A stretch of DNA of 64,000 nt, taken from NCBI GenBank assembly GCA_047495785.1, contig JBLDXI010000032.1:1798001-1862000 (forward strand), written 5' to 3'. The notes under the pieces were generated by a model. That model searched no databases and was not told the origin of the DNA. It saw only the letters and a program-made list of their open reading frames with translations. Source of the DNA: Lepidodermella squamata. Taxonomy: Eukaryota > Animalia > Gastrotricha. The translations under genes were made by a program, and so were the position numbers. Every line of letters begins with the position of its first letter. Position 1 is the first letter of the stretch. Below, one piece after another: positions 16,410 through 26,729 of the stretch.

Positions 16410-18580
16410 ATCAGCCGCAGAATGTTACCGAACGAGAGCGAAACGGCAGATGATGTCGTTTACAAACTGAGCTCGCCAGGCGATCTGTTCCTGAAAAATA
16501 TATTCAAATTCCTCAACAGTTCGTCCGAATCAAGAAAGCTGTCCAGATCACGTAAGGCAGGAAAAGAAAGGCATTCAGGTCAATTATTGCTTCATTTATT
16601 AGAATTGACAACCCTCCTACAATTTCTGGGGAGAGATGGAATAAATGGCACGGGCAGTGATTGCTACTCGGTGGATGAGCTTCTAGATGACTACAACATA
16701 AGCCCTTATAATGTCAGCATTTCGGCCGAGACTTTTCTCTCCATTTGCCCCGCTCTGGTTCAAAAGCAGCTTAGCGACAACTGTAACTTCCATCATGGGA
16801 GATCTTCCACAGCGATGCAGCATTTGCAGCCAGGGACATTAGCTGAGCGTAAGGTTGCACATCTCAAAATAGCGAGGGTGTAGCATATTTTCTTTAGAGT
16901 ACGGTTACGGTACCGCAGCAGTGGCAATCATTAGCTTTATTCCAATTGTGCTTTTCTTCATTATTCCTAAACCTAGCCATCGTTTATACCCTTACATCAT
17001 GAACATGCTAATGTAGGTAATAAGTCTCAAATGGATATTGTCGTACATTTTTGCGTTAATAGCGCCCTGGCTACCGGAACATTGATCAGCGATGGTGTTC
17101 TTCATTTGATTCCCCAAGCTTTAGGATTCAACGTCGTTCTTTCAGTTGCACCTGATCATAATTTTCAAGTCCGTTTTTCCGATACTCTTCTAAAACAAGT
17201 GATGCTACTGGGGTCTATTTACGCGATGTATCTGTAAGTTTCACCATCAGATATAAGGCCAAAGATTTAAAGATTCATCGTTATAGGTTCTCTCTGTTGA
17301 TGGGCATTCGCGAAAGGGAACAAGGAGTTGTTGGACATGGCCATGGCCACTCTCATACTATGGCACCTGAGTATCCGGAACCTGAGCCGCAGCCTGCTCC
17401 AGTCAGGCGTAACAATATGGATAGTGTATCATCCGCTCCATTCATACGGGCGACGGATTGGTCAAACGAAAACACTGTTACAAGCATTACTCAGCTGTCA
17501 GATTTCAAGCCAGGCTACAGGACAAGGGCTGAGACGGTCAGCGAATACGTTGAGAAAACGAAAAGCCTTGAGGAGGATCCGGACGAGGATATTGAGGATG
17601 AAGTCAAGTATCAGTTAGTGGAGAGACTTGACACTGCCTCGCCAGGGTTGGAGCCAATTGCCACGCCAATCGGTCAATCAAGAAGGCACATACCGTTCGT
17701 CACCATGACGAGTGTTCAAATCCGAAGTAAGAAATTTGGCATTATTTCTGGATCTTTTTCTTATAATCACGTACAACTAGAAATGCATGCATATATCCGA
17801 CAGTGGCTGAAAGGTGAGAATTTGACTTCTTTTAATATGATTTCTTTATACCCAGTTTTTGTGGAGAATGCGTTCCCAAGAAATCGTTTGGCTACGTTGT
17901 GATTCTAAGTAAGTTCAAGAGAGTAAAATCGACTTGTGATTATGAAAACCTCTTACCTCTTAGGCGATCTCATTCACAACGTCATGGATGGAGTTGCTAT
18001 CGGGGCAGCCTTTTCGAGGAATCCTGTGAGCGGCGTATCAACTACAGTGGCTATAGCTTTTCATGAGGTGAGAAGGGTTTTATTTTTTTTCAAAGGATCC
18101 TATCGACGCTCGTGAACTTAGATTCCACATGAAATCGGGGATTTCGCTGCATTGATAACATCTGGCGTAAGCTGGCGTGGTGCAATGACTTGGAACATAT
18201 TGCTGTCGCTGACATCTTTCGTAGGTCTCTACATAGGTCTTGCGGTTTCTACCGACGAGCCCGTCCGCCGATGGGTATTCGCATTCACAGCCGGTATATT
18301 TCTTCATCATGCACTCAGTGAATTCGTAAGTTAACTCTGGTCCACGTCTGCCGTAGTCATAAGTTATTTCTTTCAGCTTCCTGAAATGATGCATATTCCG
18401 AAGCATTTTTGGAGATACTTTTTCCTGCAAAATTTCGGATTACTCCTCGGCTTTTCAATTATGTTTTTGATGTCGATTTTTGAGGAATCACTTCATCACA
18501 AAATATCGATGTCATACGCTTCTAGCAGCCTTTCAAAATCCGGTGACTTCGAATTTTCGCCAGGGCGTGAACAATTTTGA
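16410..18580 (-). other. No supportable gene on the minus strand; antisense ORFs here are shadows of ZIP paralogue 1
   Basis: ORF 18080-18430(-) overlaps ZIP transmembrane exons and has no recognisable motifs. Confidence 0.3.
16410..18580 (+). CDS. SLC39A: SLC39A/ZIP LIV-1-type metal transporter, paralogue 1 (start exon uncertain)
   Basis: CPALV (PAL motif), YGYGT TM1, LATGTLISDGVLHLIPQ, GHGHGHSH loop, GDLIHNVMDG (TM4) and FHE|IPHEIGDF (TM5, split by an intron). Confidence 0.93.
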
Positions 18581-19168
18581 GCTTCGCTTTCTAACTAAAA
18601 CAAACCGGTTACTCTTTTTTACATACTATTTTAGCCCGTATAACGCCATATCTAATCCTATTTTTGTGACGACAGCCAAAGAATAAACCATGGAATTGAG
18701 TTTTTGCTATTCGCCGTTGGAGAGAACGAGACCCCGGACCTTGTAGACAGCGTAGTCTTGATACAAAGCACCTCATTACTTTTCGGTTTTTGGGTGCCAC
18801 TTGTCTAAACCTAGGCGTCGATTTTCAAAGAGGTATTCCACCAGAAAAGCAAATGCATGAAAGGCCATTGATTCTGAAGCATAAAGCGTAATACGTGGCG
18901 GAAGATAAGTATAATTGATTCGTGAATGCTTCCAGCTTCGTCGCCCTCAAAACATGCTCGCGCTCACACGTTGAATAGAAAGTGTTAACTTCATTCTGCC
19001 AGCAGCACTTCGCAATATTTTCACCTCAAAGGTGCCTATAGGTATTGAGGTCGCTTATTTTTTTTCGACATCCTATTCAAAGCTTAAGTGTCCCAGCCAC
19101 AAGAATCGATAAGACATAAACACCTGTTTTGCTCGTTCGCTTCCGAACACGAGTATTCTCAAAATAGG

Positions 19169-21444
19169 ATGGGGTTTCTTGGTACGTGTTATGTGCTCTT
19201 CACAGCGATCGCTGTGTCACGAGCAGCTCAACCTAGCGCCCCGGTACGTGATTGGAATGTTTAAGCATGCAATAATCAGATGGCTATGTTCTTCACAGGT
19301 GCAGCCAAGCAACCCAAAACCAATGCTTCCAAAAATGGTTCCATCAGTCAAAAACTTTACCAATATTACGGTGGAGAATCATACGGTAGTTCTTGGTCCA
19401 GCAGGAGAGCACTATCTTCAAGACATTTTTAAATATCTGAACGGCCCAACTTCATCGAAGTCTCTAACTAAATTTCGTCAGTCGCATAGTCGCAGCGTTT
19501 CTCGAGTAACATTATTGTACATTTCAGAGTTGGCGAATCTGCTGAAAGTACTGGAGAGAAATGGAACAAACAGTACAGGTGGCGAATGCTATTCTATCGA
19601 CAGACTGCTTCAGGAATATGAGATCGACGTAATCAACGTCAACATTTCTGGGGATACTTTTCTGTCACTGTGCCCAGCCTTAATTCATCAGCAATTAACG
19701 AATGAATGCGACGATGATTACTTGAAGTACCTGAAAATAACTACTCCTGTTAGCCCGCCACCAGCCATTCACGAAAGTTAGTTGATCGCCTCTTACCTTT
19801 TAGTTCCATTTTGAAGTTTTTCCCTTCAGAATATGGCTACGGGACAGCGGCTGTTTCAATCATCAGCATCATTCCAATAGTCTTGTTCTTCATCATACCG
19901 AAACCTGACCACAGGCTCTACCCGTTTATCATGAATACCTTGATGTTAGCTATAAATCTAAAAAGTGAGTGGGTAACGTGAACTTATTTTGCAGAGCCAT
20001 GGCGGCTGCAACTCTTGTAAGCGACGGGGTTTTGCACCTGATTCCACAAGCCTTAGGGTTCAACATGGTTGTGACAATGTCCGGTTCCGACCATTCAGTC
20101 GTCAAGTTTTCCGACACGCTATTGAAACAAGTTATGCTATTGGCTTCGATTTATGCCATGTACCTGTAAGTCTTGATTTAGGAAGCTACAGTTTATCATC
20201 TTAATGTTTTTACAGGTTTTCCTTGCTAATGGGAATTCGTGAAAGAGCTCAGGGCACAGACACAGAATCTGTTCATGGACATGGCCACAGCCACGGACAT
20301 GTTGACCATCACCACACACAGGCGGCTAGAAAAGCTCATGAAAACAGCATTTCATCCTCTGCGCCTTTCAGAATTAACGACTCGACGAATGACATGACCG
20401 TTACGAGTATTTCCCAGCTTTCGGATTTCCGCTCTCGCAGCGCTACTACATGCGAACTAGTAACTAGTAAGGCTAGCCTTGCCGAATCACAGGAGGATAA
20501 CATTGAGCCTGCTGACTCTGAGGATGTCCAAGATGGTTTGAAAGAGGATCAAACAGGAATGGATTCGGAAAATGCTCCACCACCATGCTACGAACTGAAG
20601 GCCGATCACAAACATGTATCTCGGCGGAAGTCGATAATCGACACTACTATTTCGAAAATCAGGGGTAGTCCTTGAATTTCCAAGTGAAGGTGCATATATC
20701 ATTGAATTTGTCACTAGGGTCAAACGCGCACATCAAACAATGGCTCAAAGGTAGTACGGACATACGGATATGTTACCCTAATTTCATGTTTTTTCAGAGT
20801 GTGTACCCAAGAAATCTTTTGGCTATATTGTGATTCTCAGTAAGTCTTAGTAGTCTATAATTAAAGAGATCAAAGAAGTTGGCGAATTTCTTAGGCGACT
20901 TGACTCACAATGTAATGGATGGTATCGCAATAGGAGCAGCATTTTCTAGGAACCCAGTAAGTGGCATTTCTACAACCATGGCCATTGCTTTTCACGAGGT
21001 AAATACTTCGGTTGGACATCAAACTGGTTATACTGGTATATTTCTCAAGATTCCGCATGAAATCGGAGACTTTGCGGCCCTTATAACCGCAGGGGTCACT
21101 TGGCGTGGCGCAATGACTTGGAACATTGTACTATCCATGACAGCTTTCATTGGTCTATACGTCGGACTTGGCGTTTCAACCGATGAATCAGCTCGGCAAT
21201 GGGTTTTCGCCTTTACTGCCGGAATCTTTTTACATCATTCGCTTAGCGAATTCGTAAGTGAACACGAAACTGCTTGAAGTCGTGGCTAAATTTTCAGTTA
21301 CAGCTACCGGAGCTTCTGCATATAACTGATCATTTCTGGACTTACTTCGCTCTTCAAAATTTTGGATTGTTGCTCGGTTTCTCGATCATGTTCCTGATGT
21401 CCATATTTGAAGAATCGTTACACTACAAAATAAGCACTTCATAA
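19169..21444 (+). CDS. SLC39A: SLC39A/ZIP LIV-1-type transporter, paralogue 2
   Basis: Signal peptide MGFLGTCYVLFTAIAVSRA; CPALIHQQL; HGHGHSHGHVDHHH; GDLTHNVMDG; FHE|IPHEIGDF. Same intron pattern as paralogue 1. TAA at 21442-21444. Confidence 0.94.
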
Positions 21445-21818
21445 GCGACAGCCTTTCAGTCGAACTACATAAATATAAAAATAATCCAAGTTGCGCATTG
21501 GGCAACTTCAAAACTGACTTCTCTTGTACTAATACTGCAATTTAGTTCCAAAACTTTAAAATTGACAGGTAAATTTTAAGTTCCAGTCAACTTTTGATAC
21601 CGGTTTGACACGTCAATAAACTACAATATTTTGATCACGAATGGCTGACACTATTGCGTCATGATTAAAACTCCAAACTTTCACCTATTCGCGAGATTTC
21701 GTCGAAAGGTTAAGCCCGCGCATGCAGCAACGTTTTACACGTTTTTGCTGTCAGAAAAACAACAAAGCATATACAGACAACTATTCGAATTGCAGCTCAA
21801 ATATTGTCAGATAGACCG

Positions 21819-23993
21819 ATGGTTTCGCCTGAGATATTTCCGAGAAATATTTTACGCAACTACTTTGTTGCCACAACTTCAACACTGCTTTTCTTCGCAT
21901 TCGCAGAGCTTCGATTGTCCCTCGCTTTTGAGCAGGAGAGTGTGAATGCTACCGAAGTCTTAAATTCAACATACCTGTTGGTTATGGATGATCAGACGGT
22001 ACGTTTTTCTATTTCAATAATCAAGGTAAGCTAGCTCCTTTGTTCAGAAATGTAAAGCAGCCAAGACGCTTCTGGAAAAGTATGATTACGACGAAGATGG
22101 GTTGGTTGCGGTAGAAAACTTGACATTGATATGCCCGGTGCTCGTCAATGAAGATTTATTGTCAGCAATTTCAACGGCTGATAAGTGTGCGGTTGACCTG
22201 ATTTCTGCCGTTAACGCTGATGTCTACGACAAGAAAATGACCTCTGTTGCTGAGCGTTTTGGATACGGCACTCTTTCCATCGTAATCATCAGTGCTCTCC
22301 CGGCCGGACTGTTCTTCATTATACCGAAACCGAACCATCCGAAATATCCTTTTGTAATGATGAGCCTGATGTAATATTTAAACCTTAAACAGAACCTTGA
22401 TTGACATTTCATTGATTCTTGTCTTAAGCTCTTTGGCCATGTCGACGCTGGTCTGCGATACAACAATGCATCTAATTCCCAAGGTTCCTAATGGGAATAT
22501 TTGAATATTGCTGATGTATCTCTTTTTGAAGGCCTTTGATTTCAGGAAAAATAAGGTTCAGTATGCAGGAGGAGCGATAGTCATCACTAATAATCTGCTG
22601 AAAGAGTTGCTCATGTTATTACCCATCTACATTCTCTACATGTGAGTCGCCATCTACCAAAGGAAGTGATTATCATGCTGCTCTGTTGATACAGGCTGGA
22701 AATGCTCATGGGCACCAGGCAGCATATAATGAACCACTCTCACTCTGGCAGTGGAGATGATCGAAACCCAGAATCAATCGAACTCGGCAAATCGCAGTCT
22801 TCATGCGAACCAAGCAATGTGGCATCTCGTAGATTTAGTATTGAACTAGGGCCTGGCACTCATATGACAAAACTGAAGTCACAGATTTCGGTCAGAAAAC
22901 CCTGTTACCTCTCGCTATATATGTTTCATTGGTGTCCCAATTTAGGAATTTGATAGCCCAAACGTCTGCCGTGTAGCTGTTCCTTACAACGACAAGCCTA
23001 ATGTTAATGAGGACCAGATGAATCCAGCGCGCCGAGTTCGCACAACATCATGTGTCAAACATAGGGGTATTAAATGCCTGTTCATTTTCAGCAGAAAAGC
23101 TTTGCTTATCTGGCATTCCAGGGTTTCAAAAATATGCTGCAGCCTACATAACAGGTGAGAACTCGCTTCGTTTGAATCTTATATTCGCAAAAGACATTTT
23201 TCGCCTAGACTGTGCCCCAAAGAAAGAACTGGGCTGGGTAATTATAACTAGTAAGTTTACCCCGTTTACTCCAATACAAGTTCTTTTAATTTCTTCTTAC
23301 CTTTCCCAGCCGATGCGACTCACAACGTAAGTTCTAAGTTCACATCTCCCTTCTTTTATTGAAAAGAAATGTTTTCATTTCAAAATTAGCTGTTGGACGG
23401 CATGGCTATCGGTACTTGGATCTTTGATGTGCCAACGTAATGCATGCTAAATCTCTCTCATATAGGAGCTGCCTTTTCTACCAGTGTTTTAAGCGGTGTT
23501 TCGTCATCTATAGCTGTGGTGAGCTTATGACAATGCAATTAGAACATTTGAGCTATTCCGTAAAATAGCTTTTCCAGGAGGTTCCTTTCGAAATCGGCGA
23601 TTTTGCTGCTCTCATTAAGAGCGGGGTCGCGTGGAGAGGTGCAGTGTCATGGCACCTCTTCCAAACCATTATCTCTTTCATCGGGCTTTACATTGGACTG
23701 GGTGTTTCAACGGACGACAGCGCTCGCCAATGGGTCTACATTTTCATAGCCGGTGTTTTCCTGCACCACGCGCTGTGTGAATTTGTATGTCAAGAGATTG
23801 CTTTATACTTCTATGAGTTTATAAAAATCTTGCTATCCGTCAGATGCCCGAATTGGTTCACATTAAGGAAAAATTCTGGACTTGCCTGCTACTTCAGCAC
23901 ATTGGAATTATAATGGGTTTTGGTGTGATTTTTATCATCACGATATTTGAAGAACCTCTGCATTATTCATTCAAAATGACTCAGCAACCCTGA
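21819..23993 (+). CDS. SLC39A: SLC39A/ZIP LIV-1-type transporter, paralogue 3 (variant metal site)
   Basis: Hydrophobic N-terminus; CPVLV; FGYGT; TDATHN|LLDG; LFQEVPFEIGDF. TGA at 23991-23993. Confidence 0.92.
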
Positions 23994-24467
23994 GCCTTTT
24001 CGAGCGAAGTAAAAATAGTATAACAAACTAGTTCATGAACTTTTTATAGTATCATACGTGCGAAGAACAACACTCCAAGCCTGGCAATCGAATGACGTCA
24101 ATCAGTTGGAGTATTAACTCAAGATGAATGCCATCGACTAAAGCCGGTACGTGCTAACGTCAACTACAGCCTCGCCACTGGGTTATATAGGTCCTGAAAT
24201 AATTATGTAGTTGGGAACTATACACGTGTTAAGCTACTGGATACGAATAATTGCTGTGGCGTATACGGTATGTGAGGGTGTCAAGTAATAATTGAGCAGA
24301 ATAAAGCATGCATTTTTTGTGATGTAGTTAACAGTTAACAACCAAAAAGGTAGCTATTACAGCAAGAGTGTTGCCACCCTGTCAGCAAGCCAAAGTAGTT
24401 GAAGCTTATAAAACATGGCTCATTGGTTCCCAGGCTATTGTAGGCATTAGATTTGGTTCCAGCGAAA

Positions 24468-26729
24468 ATGGCGTCATTTTTGTTGTCGTCGAAGTTCTCA
24501 GCAACGGCAATCTTTTGGTTTATAGCAACGCTGAATATCAATCTGACTGCTTCATACGACACTTCAGGTGGATGTCCTTTCAATTGGTATCCAATATTAA
24601 AACACGCTTCTCTTCGTTAACTAGCTCACAACGCAACTGAATTTTCTGATCCCGAGGTATAATGCCAAGTTAACGTATTCTGTTATAGTAATTTCAATTG
24701 TTTCCCAGAAATGTTTAGCGGCAAGAGCAATGCTAGACATTTACGACCATGATTCAGACGGTTTAGTTTCGGTGGAAAATCTGACGGCCATATGCCCGAT
24801 TGTCTCGGATCAGGAACTAATCCGGGTTCTCAAGCACTACAACGACTGCAGTATTCAATTTATGAAAAATGACGATGACGATATCTACCATAAAAAGATG
24901 ACGTCCATATCGGAGCGCTATGGCTACGGAACTCTGTCAATTACCATCATTAGCATACTTCCAGTTGGCCTATTTTTCATCATTCCCAAGCCCGATCATC
25001 CAAAATACCATTACGTCATGGTTACTCTCATGTGAGTTCGGTGTGCTTTTTTTATGCAGGATTGAATATTCTACGCAGATCTTTGGCGATGTCCACTTTG
25101 GTATCTGATACCGCTCTCCATCTCATCCCGAAAGTTCGTATTTTCTTACGGATAGAAGAGTTTTTGTTAATTGGCATTTTCAGGCGTTCGATTTCAGGAA
25201 AAGTAAAACTACAACTGCCGGTGGTGTTATTGCTATAACTAATACCGTCCTCAAGGAGTTACTGCTGCTTATGCCTATTTACGTTCTTTACTTGTAAGTA
25301 TACCCTGACCACATAGCGCATTGAACCAGCCTGTAATTTAGATTTGAAATGCTTATTGGAACCCGGCAGCACATAAACAGCGGCGACTCAGACCATCATG
25401 GCAGTCATCATGGTGATGCAGGTGAGCATTCGCATGTAAAGAGCACGTCAAAGAGGCCCCGTAAAAGTCATGGTCAGCGGAAACTAAGCATGGCTTTGGC
25501 CATTAGGGATCTTCCTCTGCCGGACTTCACGGTATCATCAAATGAGCCGCTGCCTGACGCAGTAAGTCAACGCAGATTCAGTATAGCTCTTGGCCCTGGT
25601 AGTCATCTGACTAAGATGGCTCCTATCAGCACGATTTCTGTTCGTTCCATACGTTAATTCATTTTCCCAGTCACAACAATAACTTGGATCACAGGAGCTG
25701 GACGAAACAGCTGATAATGACACCAGACATAAGCCAGCAACGAACGGCACAATATCTGTGAAGCCTAATCGGGCTCTTCATGTGCGACGCGTTTCGACAT
25801 ACCTTGGAAGTAGTTTGACAAGTAAAACCAAAATGAAAAATTACACTGATGCATAAATCCCAACTTTTTGATATAAGGGTTCCGAGAATTGGCAAGGCTT
25901 TACATCGCTGGTATACATTTTCAAATTTCGCTGAAATGCGTTTGTCATGTTGAAATTTCGATAGATTGCATACCCAAGAAAGGCCTTGGCTGGGTTATCA
26001 TAATCAGTAAGTTCGACTTCATTCGATCCGCTTGTACCTAATCGTTTGGTTTTTCAGCCGATGCTACTCACAATGTAATAATTTCAATCTTTTTCCAATG
26101 TAAGACTTTTCTATTTTGATTTCAACAGCTACTAGACGGCCTCGCGATCGGTATGAAATATCGAATTTCGAATATCACTCTTGGCTATCGCATACTTTCG
26201 TTAGGTGCTGCGTTTTCAACAAGTGTTCTCAGTGGTATCTCAACTTCCCTCGCCGTAGTAAGTTGTTCAAAAAATACTCGATGTACCAAAAATTCTCTCC
26301 GATTTGATAAGGTCTTCCAGGAGGTACCTTTCGAGATCGGAGATTTCGCTGCTCTAATCAATGCAGGCGTTGCATGGCGCGGTGCAGTAACATGGCACGT
26401 ATTTCAAACAGTCATGTCATTCACTGGTCTGTACGTTGGCCTCGGAGTATCGACTGATGACTATGCTCGCCAATGGGTCTACATATTTATTGCCGGGGTT
26501 TTCCTGCACCATGCTCTTTGCGAATTCGTAAGTCGAGAAAGCCTTATTCCACATCGTTATGACTGCTCAGCCTTTTCAGATGCCTGAGTTGGTTCATATA
26601 AAGGAGAACTTCTGGACCTATTTACTGCTGGAGCATGTTGGAATCATCATTGGCTTCGCTGTCGTATTCATCATCACTATTTTCGAAGAACCTTTACATT
26701 ACTCTTTCCAAAAAGCCCAACAGGGTTAA
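24468..26729 (+). CDS. SLC39A: SLC39A/ZIP LIV-1-type transporter, paralogue 4 (variant metal site)
   Basis: MASFLLSSKFSATAIFWFIA signal; CPIVS; YGYGT; His-rich loop; TDATHN|LLDG; VFQEVPFEIGDF. TAA at 26727-26729. Confidence 0.92.

Follow-up and report, generated by a model that had tools for sequence, protein, structure and literature searches.

Two tandem LIV-1-type ZIP genes of the gastrotrich Lepidodermella squamata have both signature histidines of transmembrane segment 5 replaced

The two histidines of the HEXPHEXGD motif in transmembrane segment 5 (TM5) name and define the LIV-1 subfamily among ZIP metal transporters, and they are usually treated as core zinc ligands. A natural departure from this motif, EEXPHEXGD in ZIP8 and ZIP14, is linked to broader transport of Mn, Fe and Cd, and both proteins are still counted as LIV-1. 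Here we describe a tandem array of four LIV-1-type ZIP genes, P1 to P4, on the + strand of a 64,000-nucleotide stretch of the genome of the gastrotrich Lepidodermella squamata (contig JBLDXI010000032.1, positions 1,798,001 to 1,862,000; this whole stretch is called the window, and coordinates are positions within it). P1 and P2 have both histidines of the motif, and P3 and P4 have neither.

The contribution of these positions to transport is known from mutagenesis. In hZIP4, the metal site M1 is formed by H507, D511, H536 and H540, with the counterparts H177, E181, Q207 and E211 in BbZIP, and the site M2 by N508, D511 and E537 (PMC5573306). In the same study, D511A nearly abolished transport, H507A, N508A, H536A and E537A caused a moderate loss, H540A raised transport more than 2-fold with a lower apparent affinity, and H540R had an activity close to that of the wild type. 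In ZIP8, H347A, at the position of H540, lowered the affinity 4-fold and raised the maximal rate (Vmax) 3-fold; E343Q, at the first position of the motif, still carried Cd but not Fe; and the M2 residues and the bridging Asp were indispensable (PMC12753238). E541 has been found to be essential, with D504 and D544 being modulatory (PMC13192868).

A six-frame motif scan of the window found four TM5 motifs of the LIV-1 type, all on the + strand and about 2.7-2.9 kb apart. In P3 and P4 the motif reads QEVPFEIGD, at 23575-23601 and 26318-26344, respectively; the residue ahead of FQEVPFEIGD is Leu in P3 (LFQEVPFEIGD) and Val in P4 (VFQEVPFEIGD). In P1 and P2 it reads FHEIPHEIGD and is split by an intron, with FHE (in AIAFHE) at 18059-18067 and IPHEIGD at 18122-18142 in P1, and at 20990-20998 and 21050-21070 in P2. 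An earlier reading of the letters, made without database searches (the sequence-only reading), had reported the same four motifs, and both the scan and a direct reading of the sequence agreed with it, while also revealing the split in P1 and P2. The P3 and P4 motif keeps five of the seven fixed positions of HEXPHEXGD; the two that differ, one more than in ZIP8 and ZIP14, are the histidines. The motif lies on an exon that spans TM5 to TM7, located at 23569-23784 (+; 72 codons) in P3 and at 26312-26527 (+) in P4. Both exons match the Pfam Zip domain (PF02535) above the cut-off of 35.1 bits, with 38.7 bits (E 9.2e-10) for P3 and 38.3 bits (E 1.2e-9) for P4.

To establish the gene models, we used two sequencing runs, X1 and X2. 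Run X1 is RNA, as indicated by its spliced contigs with GT..AG joints that the DNA run X2 lacks. For P4 (24468-26729, +; 14 exons, 525 amino acids), each modelled intron is a GT..AG joint in spliced X1 contigs and is absent from X2. The TM5-TM7 exon of P4 is bounded by the joints 26257>26312 and 26527>26580. The first of these uses the upstream of two possible acceptors, and the P4 message thus includes the codons for VFQ. The sequence-only reading had cautioned that an alternative acceptor, ttccag, would delete xFQ in frame; this acceptor is not used in the P4 RNA contig, and the accompanying remark that the histidines are absent either way stands. The model of P3 (21819-23993, +; 13 exons, 515 amino acids) was built by homology to the RNA-defined P4, and its junctions are all GT..AG. 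X1 contigs extend over several P3 exons, with the joint 21998>22053 and ends that are spliced at 22484/22529; they show transcription and at least partial splicing of P3. In P2, the RNA joints are 20839>20895, 20998>21050 and 21253>21304, of which 20998>21050 confirms the intron after FHE. A low-depth X1 contig (4.9) that joins P3 exon 1 to 22053 has AAAA in place of the genomic AAATG at 22048-22052; being shorter by one base, this variant would cause a frameshift. An assembly error or a difference between strains could account for it.

The TM4 motif HNxxDG is retained in P3 and P4, as the sequence-only reading had also claimed, and reads THNLLDG across a micro-exon junction. The HN pair is located on a 17-nt micro-exon coding for (T)DATHN, at 23310-23326 (+) in P3 and at 26058-26074 (+) in P4, which is followed by a 22-nt exon coding for LLDG(M/L)AIG. 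The P4 micro-exon is verified by RNA, appearing as 17 letters between the sides of the joint 26006>26129 in an X1 contig, and the P3 micro-exon is homologous to it. In the TM4-TM5 region, the single intron of P1 and P2 follows FHE (17964-18142 and 20895-21070), and P3 and P4 have three introns, after HN, AIG and AV (23209-23601 and 25965-26344), which yield the 17-nt and 22-nt micro-exons. The intron after AV is located four codons upstream of the intron site in P1 and P2. In three metagenomic relatives (L001, L004 and L005) the stretch from HN to HEIPHE lies on a single exon. We also considered LFQE as a possible exonised intron end, since CTTTTCCAGGAG resembles a polypyrimidine tract followed by AG, but rejected this as the simplest reading: the residues align one for one with xFHE of P1 and P2, with Phe and Glu being identical and the codons for His and Gln one base apart.

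We then placed the two replaced positions on the known metal sites. In an HMMER alignment of BbZIP to the relative P0002, through which alone the BbZIP alignment was reached, the first His corresponds to Q207 and the second to E211, in agreement with the published positions (PMC5573306). P3 and P4 keep the His, Asn and Asp of TM4 and the Asp located three residues ahead of HN, as well as D...H..P in TM2 and, in TM5, the Asp and both Glu residues. Equivalents of D511, E537, N508 and E541, which are essential in one or more of the published data sets (PMC5573306, PMC12753238, PMC13192868), are all retained. The only metal-site residues altered in P3 and P4 are the two at which substitution is known to be tolerated, and the Gln in the first position is the residue that serves BbZIP as an M1 ligand.

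In most respects P3 and P4 resemble the LIV-1 proteins hZIP4, ZIP6, ZIP10 and ZIP12. They share the Zip core, HNxxDG in TM4, xExPxExGD in TM5, D...H..P in TM2, a conserved Cys and a CP-x-L segment in the ectodomain, a His-rich loop between TM3 and TM4 (kept in P4), and their place in the tree described below. Hydropathy peaks and the alignment to relatives are compatible with a signal peptide and eight transmembrane segments. The ectodomain PAL motif (CPALLxQ) reads CPAL(V/I)xQQL in P1 and P2, CPVLVNEDL in P3 and CPIVSDQEL in P4, so that Cys-Pro is kept and the remainder has diverged. The differences from LIV-1 proteins are Gln and Phe for the two HEXPHEXGD histidines, His for the TM6 Asn and, in common with P1 and P2, FLHH for FLY in TM7.

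Each of the closest described variants shares a part of this change. ZIP8 and ZIP14 are, like P3 and P4, natural LIV-1 departures, in which the first His has been replaced by an oxygen ligand; in P3 and P4, however, this residue is Gln rather than Glu, the second His has been lost as well, and D...H of TM2 is kept, whereas ZIP8 has Q180 on TM2, at the position matching that histidine. BbZIP (Bordetella; PDB 5TSA), with QDxPEG in TM5, has the same Gln in the first position, where it coordinates metal at M1, but it is not a LIV-1 protein, and its counterpart to the Phe of P3 and P4 is Glu (E211), a ligand able to bridge M1 and M2. The hZIP4 H540A and H540R mutants and the ZIP8 H347A and H347N mutants have lost the second TM5 His and keep or raise transport at lower affinity. 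These are single engineered changes to Ala, Arg or Asn, whereas P3 and P4 combine Phe with Gln in the first position, and the combination has been fixed by selection. In a ZIP12-like protein of Mytilus (HELPQELGD), a natural LIV-1 paralogue, it is the second His that has been replaced, but by Gln, which may still be a ligand, and the first His is unchanged. The named members of its library cluster, represented by P0035 (HExPQE), are Mytilus ZIP12-like proteins from five species; the motif was read in P0035.

To determine whether the core had changed elsewhere, we compared P1 to P4 at the 72 alignment columns that are at least 80% conserved in 40 LIV-1 representatives. About 11 of the 72 are altered in P3 and P4 without being altered in both P1 and P2, and about half of these fall in loops or in the N-terminal part, which is poorly aligned. 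Four are located in the membrane core, namely the two TM5 histidines, the TM6 Asn, which has become His, and a TM2 Gly, which has become Ser (Ala in P2). The TM6 His codon is at 23653-23655 (+) in P3 and at 26396-26398 (+) in P4. Asn occupies this position in 120 of 127 representatives, and among the four paralogues only P3 and P4 have His, which may, judging from the alignment, be a compensating ligand for a lost TM5 His. One library protein (P0104, RQLPHE) likewise pairs an altered first motif position with His at the TM6 Asn site. In TM7, P1 to P4 and the library proteins P0001 and P0003 have FLHH (approximately 18301-18306, 21232-21237, 23763-23768 and 26506-26511 in P1 to P4, +), in contrast to the Tyr of FLY that is invariant in 40 of 40 other LIV-1 representatives. 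This His pair stands roughly one turn of the helix ahead of the Glu aligned with BbZIP E276 and ZIP8 D410. Owing to the TM6 His and FLHH, the pathway of P3 and P4 still holds several potential nitrogen ligands.

The descent of the four genes was examined in a maximum-likelihood tree of the TM4-TM8 region with 34 library representatives. P3 and P4 form a sister group to P1, P2 and the metagenomic P0001 (support 100/95), and the whole group is nested within a seven-member LIV-1 clade (support 100/98), the other members of which all have HExPHE. By descent, P3 and P4 are thus LIV-1 proteins, and their position in the tree indicates a single origin of Gln and Phe, as derived states, before the duplication that gave P3 and P4. 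The stem of P3 and P4 is about twice as long as that of P1 and P2 (0.50 versus 0.27) and the tip branches are short (0.09-0.14), which is the pattern that a burst of change followed by constraint would leave. Protein identity is 61% between P3 and P4, 59% between P1 and P2, and 35-38% between the two pairs.

Both variant genes are under strong constraint. In TM4-TM8, the proportions of nonsynonymous (pN) and synonymous (pS) differences are 0.090 and 0.82 for P3 and P4, and 0.097 and 0.81 for P1 and P2; the overall pS between P3 and P4 is 0.87, and 21 of 63 fourfold-degenerate sites in their TM4-TM8 region are identical. The ratio of the corresponding rates (dN/dS), proposed as a check by the sequence-only reading, is not computable, because synonymous sites are saturated in every pair; the raw values given instead show constraint. 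According to these values, P3 and P4 are as constrained as P1 and P2, and neutral decay is excluded. Furthermore, the TM5-TM7 exons of P3 and P4 are 86% identical in protein despite saturated synonymous sites; the shared QEVPFE change is not due to chance. Overall, the P3/P4 duplication is old, and purifying selection on the two genes matches that on the canonical paralogues in strength. The claim that two intact genes with divergent synonymous sites share the change under selection thus held, and neither lack of expression nor neutral evolution, which were to count against it, was found, given the fully spliced P4 RNA, the partial P3 RNA and the constraint.

The motif also proved to be rare. 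In an exhaustive HMMER search of 1.84 billion cluster representatives, with the TM5-TM7 exon of P4 as the query, we examined the best 150 of 638 hits. The best match has 59% identity and is P1/P2-like (AFHEIPHEIGDFAAL). Among these 150, the TM5 motif is HExPHE in 115, EExPHE in 7 and HExPQE in 3; the other 25 comprise 22 without a locatable motif and three one-offs (RQxPHE, MQxPQE and one spurious). None of the 150 has QExPFE, in libraries that hold almost nothing from this phylum and whose 50%-identity clusters can hide variants. Peptide patterns (QWVYIFI and [VL]FQEVPFE) gave 202 matches in JGI metagenome contigs, none of them a relative, and a degenerate DNA pattern for QExPFExGDFA gave no match in the same contigs. 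The contigs of the nearest relatives (L001-L005) have single canonical ZIP genes and no tandem QExPFE copy. A PDB sequence search with the 72-residue P4 exon returned only spurious matches to designed 'Pizza' repeat proteins. A word-index search with the stop-free reading frame 26153-26584 (region 54-125) found nothing, in an index that covers proteins of about 80-250 amino acids and is uninformative on full-length kin.

With moderate confidence, we propose that P3 and P4 are LIV-1 transporters that remain active, with an M1 site that has been remodelled and with altered kinetics or selectivity, their activity being a prediction from sequence. P3 and P4 derive from one old duplication of a canonical gene of the P1/P2 type, and the TM5 site was remodelled on their common stem. 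Gln, which BbZIP uses natively as an M1 ligand (Q207), took the place of the first His (hZIP4 H536, an M1 ligand), and Phe, which cannot bind metal, that of the second (hZIP4 H540, of the M1 ligands the closest to the exit). M1 would then consist of His, Asp, Gln and water in place of His, Asp, His and His. Having fewer nitrogen ligands, this site would bind metal more weakly and release it faster (low affinity, high capacity), probably with a shifted metal preference. The loss of both TM5 histidines most likely does not signify a dead transporter, a reading that is disfavoured by the published mutagenesis of ZIP4 and ZIP8, by the Gln of BbZIP and by the retention of the essential residues. 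Several points weigh against our proposal. We know of no ZIP in which the Gln and Phe replacements have been tested together, and Phe, with a larger side chain than the Ala of the ZIP4 and ZIP8 mutants, could block the exit. The conservation observed is that of two paralogues in one genome, as no orthologue was found in another species. The P3 TM5 junction is not among the X1 joints listed, and the upstream acceptor is backed by RNA in P4 only. Finally, the P3 loop exon 23092-23154 is doubtful, as it needs a 25-nt intron and is without RNA cover; skipping it (23066 joined to 23209) preserves the frame.

The sequence-only reading had left a choice between altered metal selectivity and a non-transporting sensor or regulatory partner. 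In our analysis, altered kinetics or selectivity appears to be the better-supported half, and the other half is weakened by the mutagenesis literature. We regard it as rather unlikely that P3 and P4 are ZIP-fold metal sensors ('transceptors' without transport) or regulatory heteromer subunits of P1 and P2 that have been selected for such a role. Both signature histidines are lost, one M1 position is occupied by Phe, a non-ligand, the genes stand in tandem with canonical paralogues, and an accelerated stem followed by constraint is the pattern of a change in function. There is a precedent for a regulatory partner in the ZIP6/ZIP10 heteromer (PMC9861476), and for sensing in hZIP4, which is reported to sense zinc for its own endocytosis (PMC7661102). 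On the other hand, the residues whose mutation abolishes transport in ZIP4 and ZIP8 are all kept, the two replaced positions tolerate substitution or are even activated by it, and the constraint on TM4-TM8 equals that of P1 and P2, which is beyond the obvious need of a scaffold role. The bolder claim, that P3 and P4 are a selected ZIP-fold class that no longer carries metal and serves as sensors or partners of P1 and P2, seems to us less probable again; if true, it would give the ZIP family its first natural 'pseudo-transporter'. It is improbable that the main message, mostly that of P3, skips the nine bases of xFQ through the ttccag acceptor, leaving TM5 three residues shorter (AV-EVPFEIGD). 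As an acceptor, TTCCAG|G does look better than gataag|G (P4) or aaatag|C (P3), and the P3 joint is missing from those listed, but the sole X1 contig across the P4 junction uses the acceptor at 26312, TM5 with xFQ agrees in length, residue for residue, with that of P1, P2 and all relatives, and the histidines are absent under either acceptor. It is very improbable that P3 and P4 are duplicates in decay or under neutral evolution, pseudogenes in the making. The lost signature residues, the X1 contig that is 1 nt short at the P3 exon 1/2 junction and the uncertain P3 loop exon would fit such decay, but the reading frames are intact over 13-14 exons despite saturated synonymous sites, pN/pS is about 0.1 in the membrane core, and the RNA is spliced.

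The canonical members of the array are P1 (16410-18580, +), the signal-peptide first exon of which was not located, and P2 (19169-21444, +; 603 amino acids); both have HNVMDG and FHE|IPHEIGD. All four reading frames are uninterrupted, with GT..AG introns of 47-63 nt apart from the doubtful 25-nt intron of P3. The spacers between these same-strand genes are just 375-590 nt long (18581-19168, 21445-21818 and 23994-24467). In the intergenic or loop sequence at 22971-23138, 24230-24651 and 21441-21557, the DNA run X2 has a second contig, at about one third of the depth and with many substitutions and small indels, which looks like a divergent second haplotype. An Rfam search of the whole window found no match.

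These results describe a natural pair of genes that has been without both TM5 histidines for a very long time under strong selection. What laboratory work had found, that H536 can be replaced and that H540 is a brake on metal release, has an evolutionary parallel in this pair. With two canonical and two variant paralogues, the one locus offers a comparison for the roles of the histidines in affinity, turnover and metal choice, which is useful to transporter specialists and does not overturn current views.

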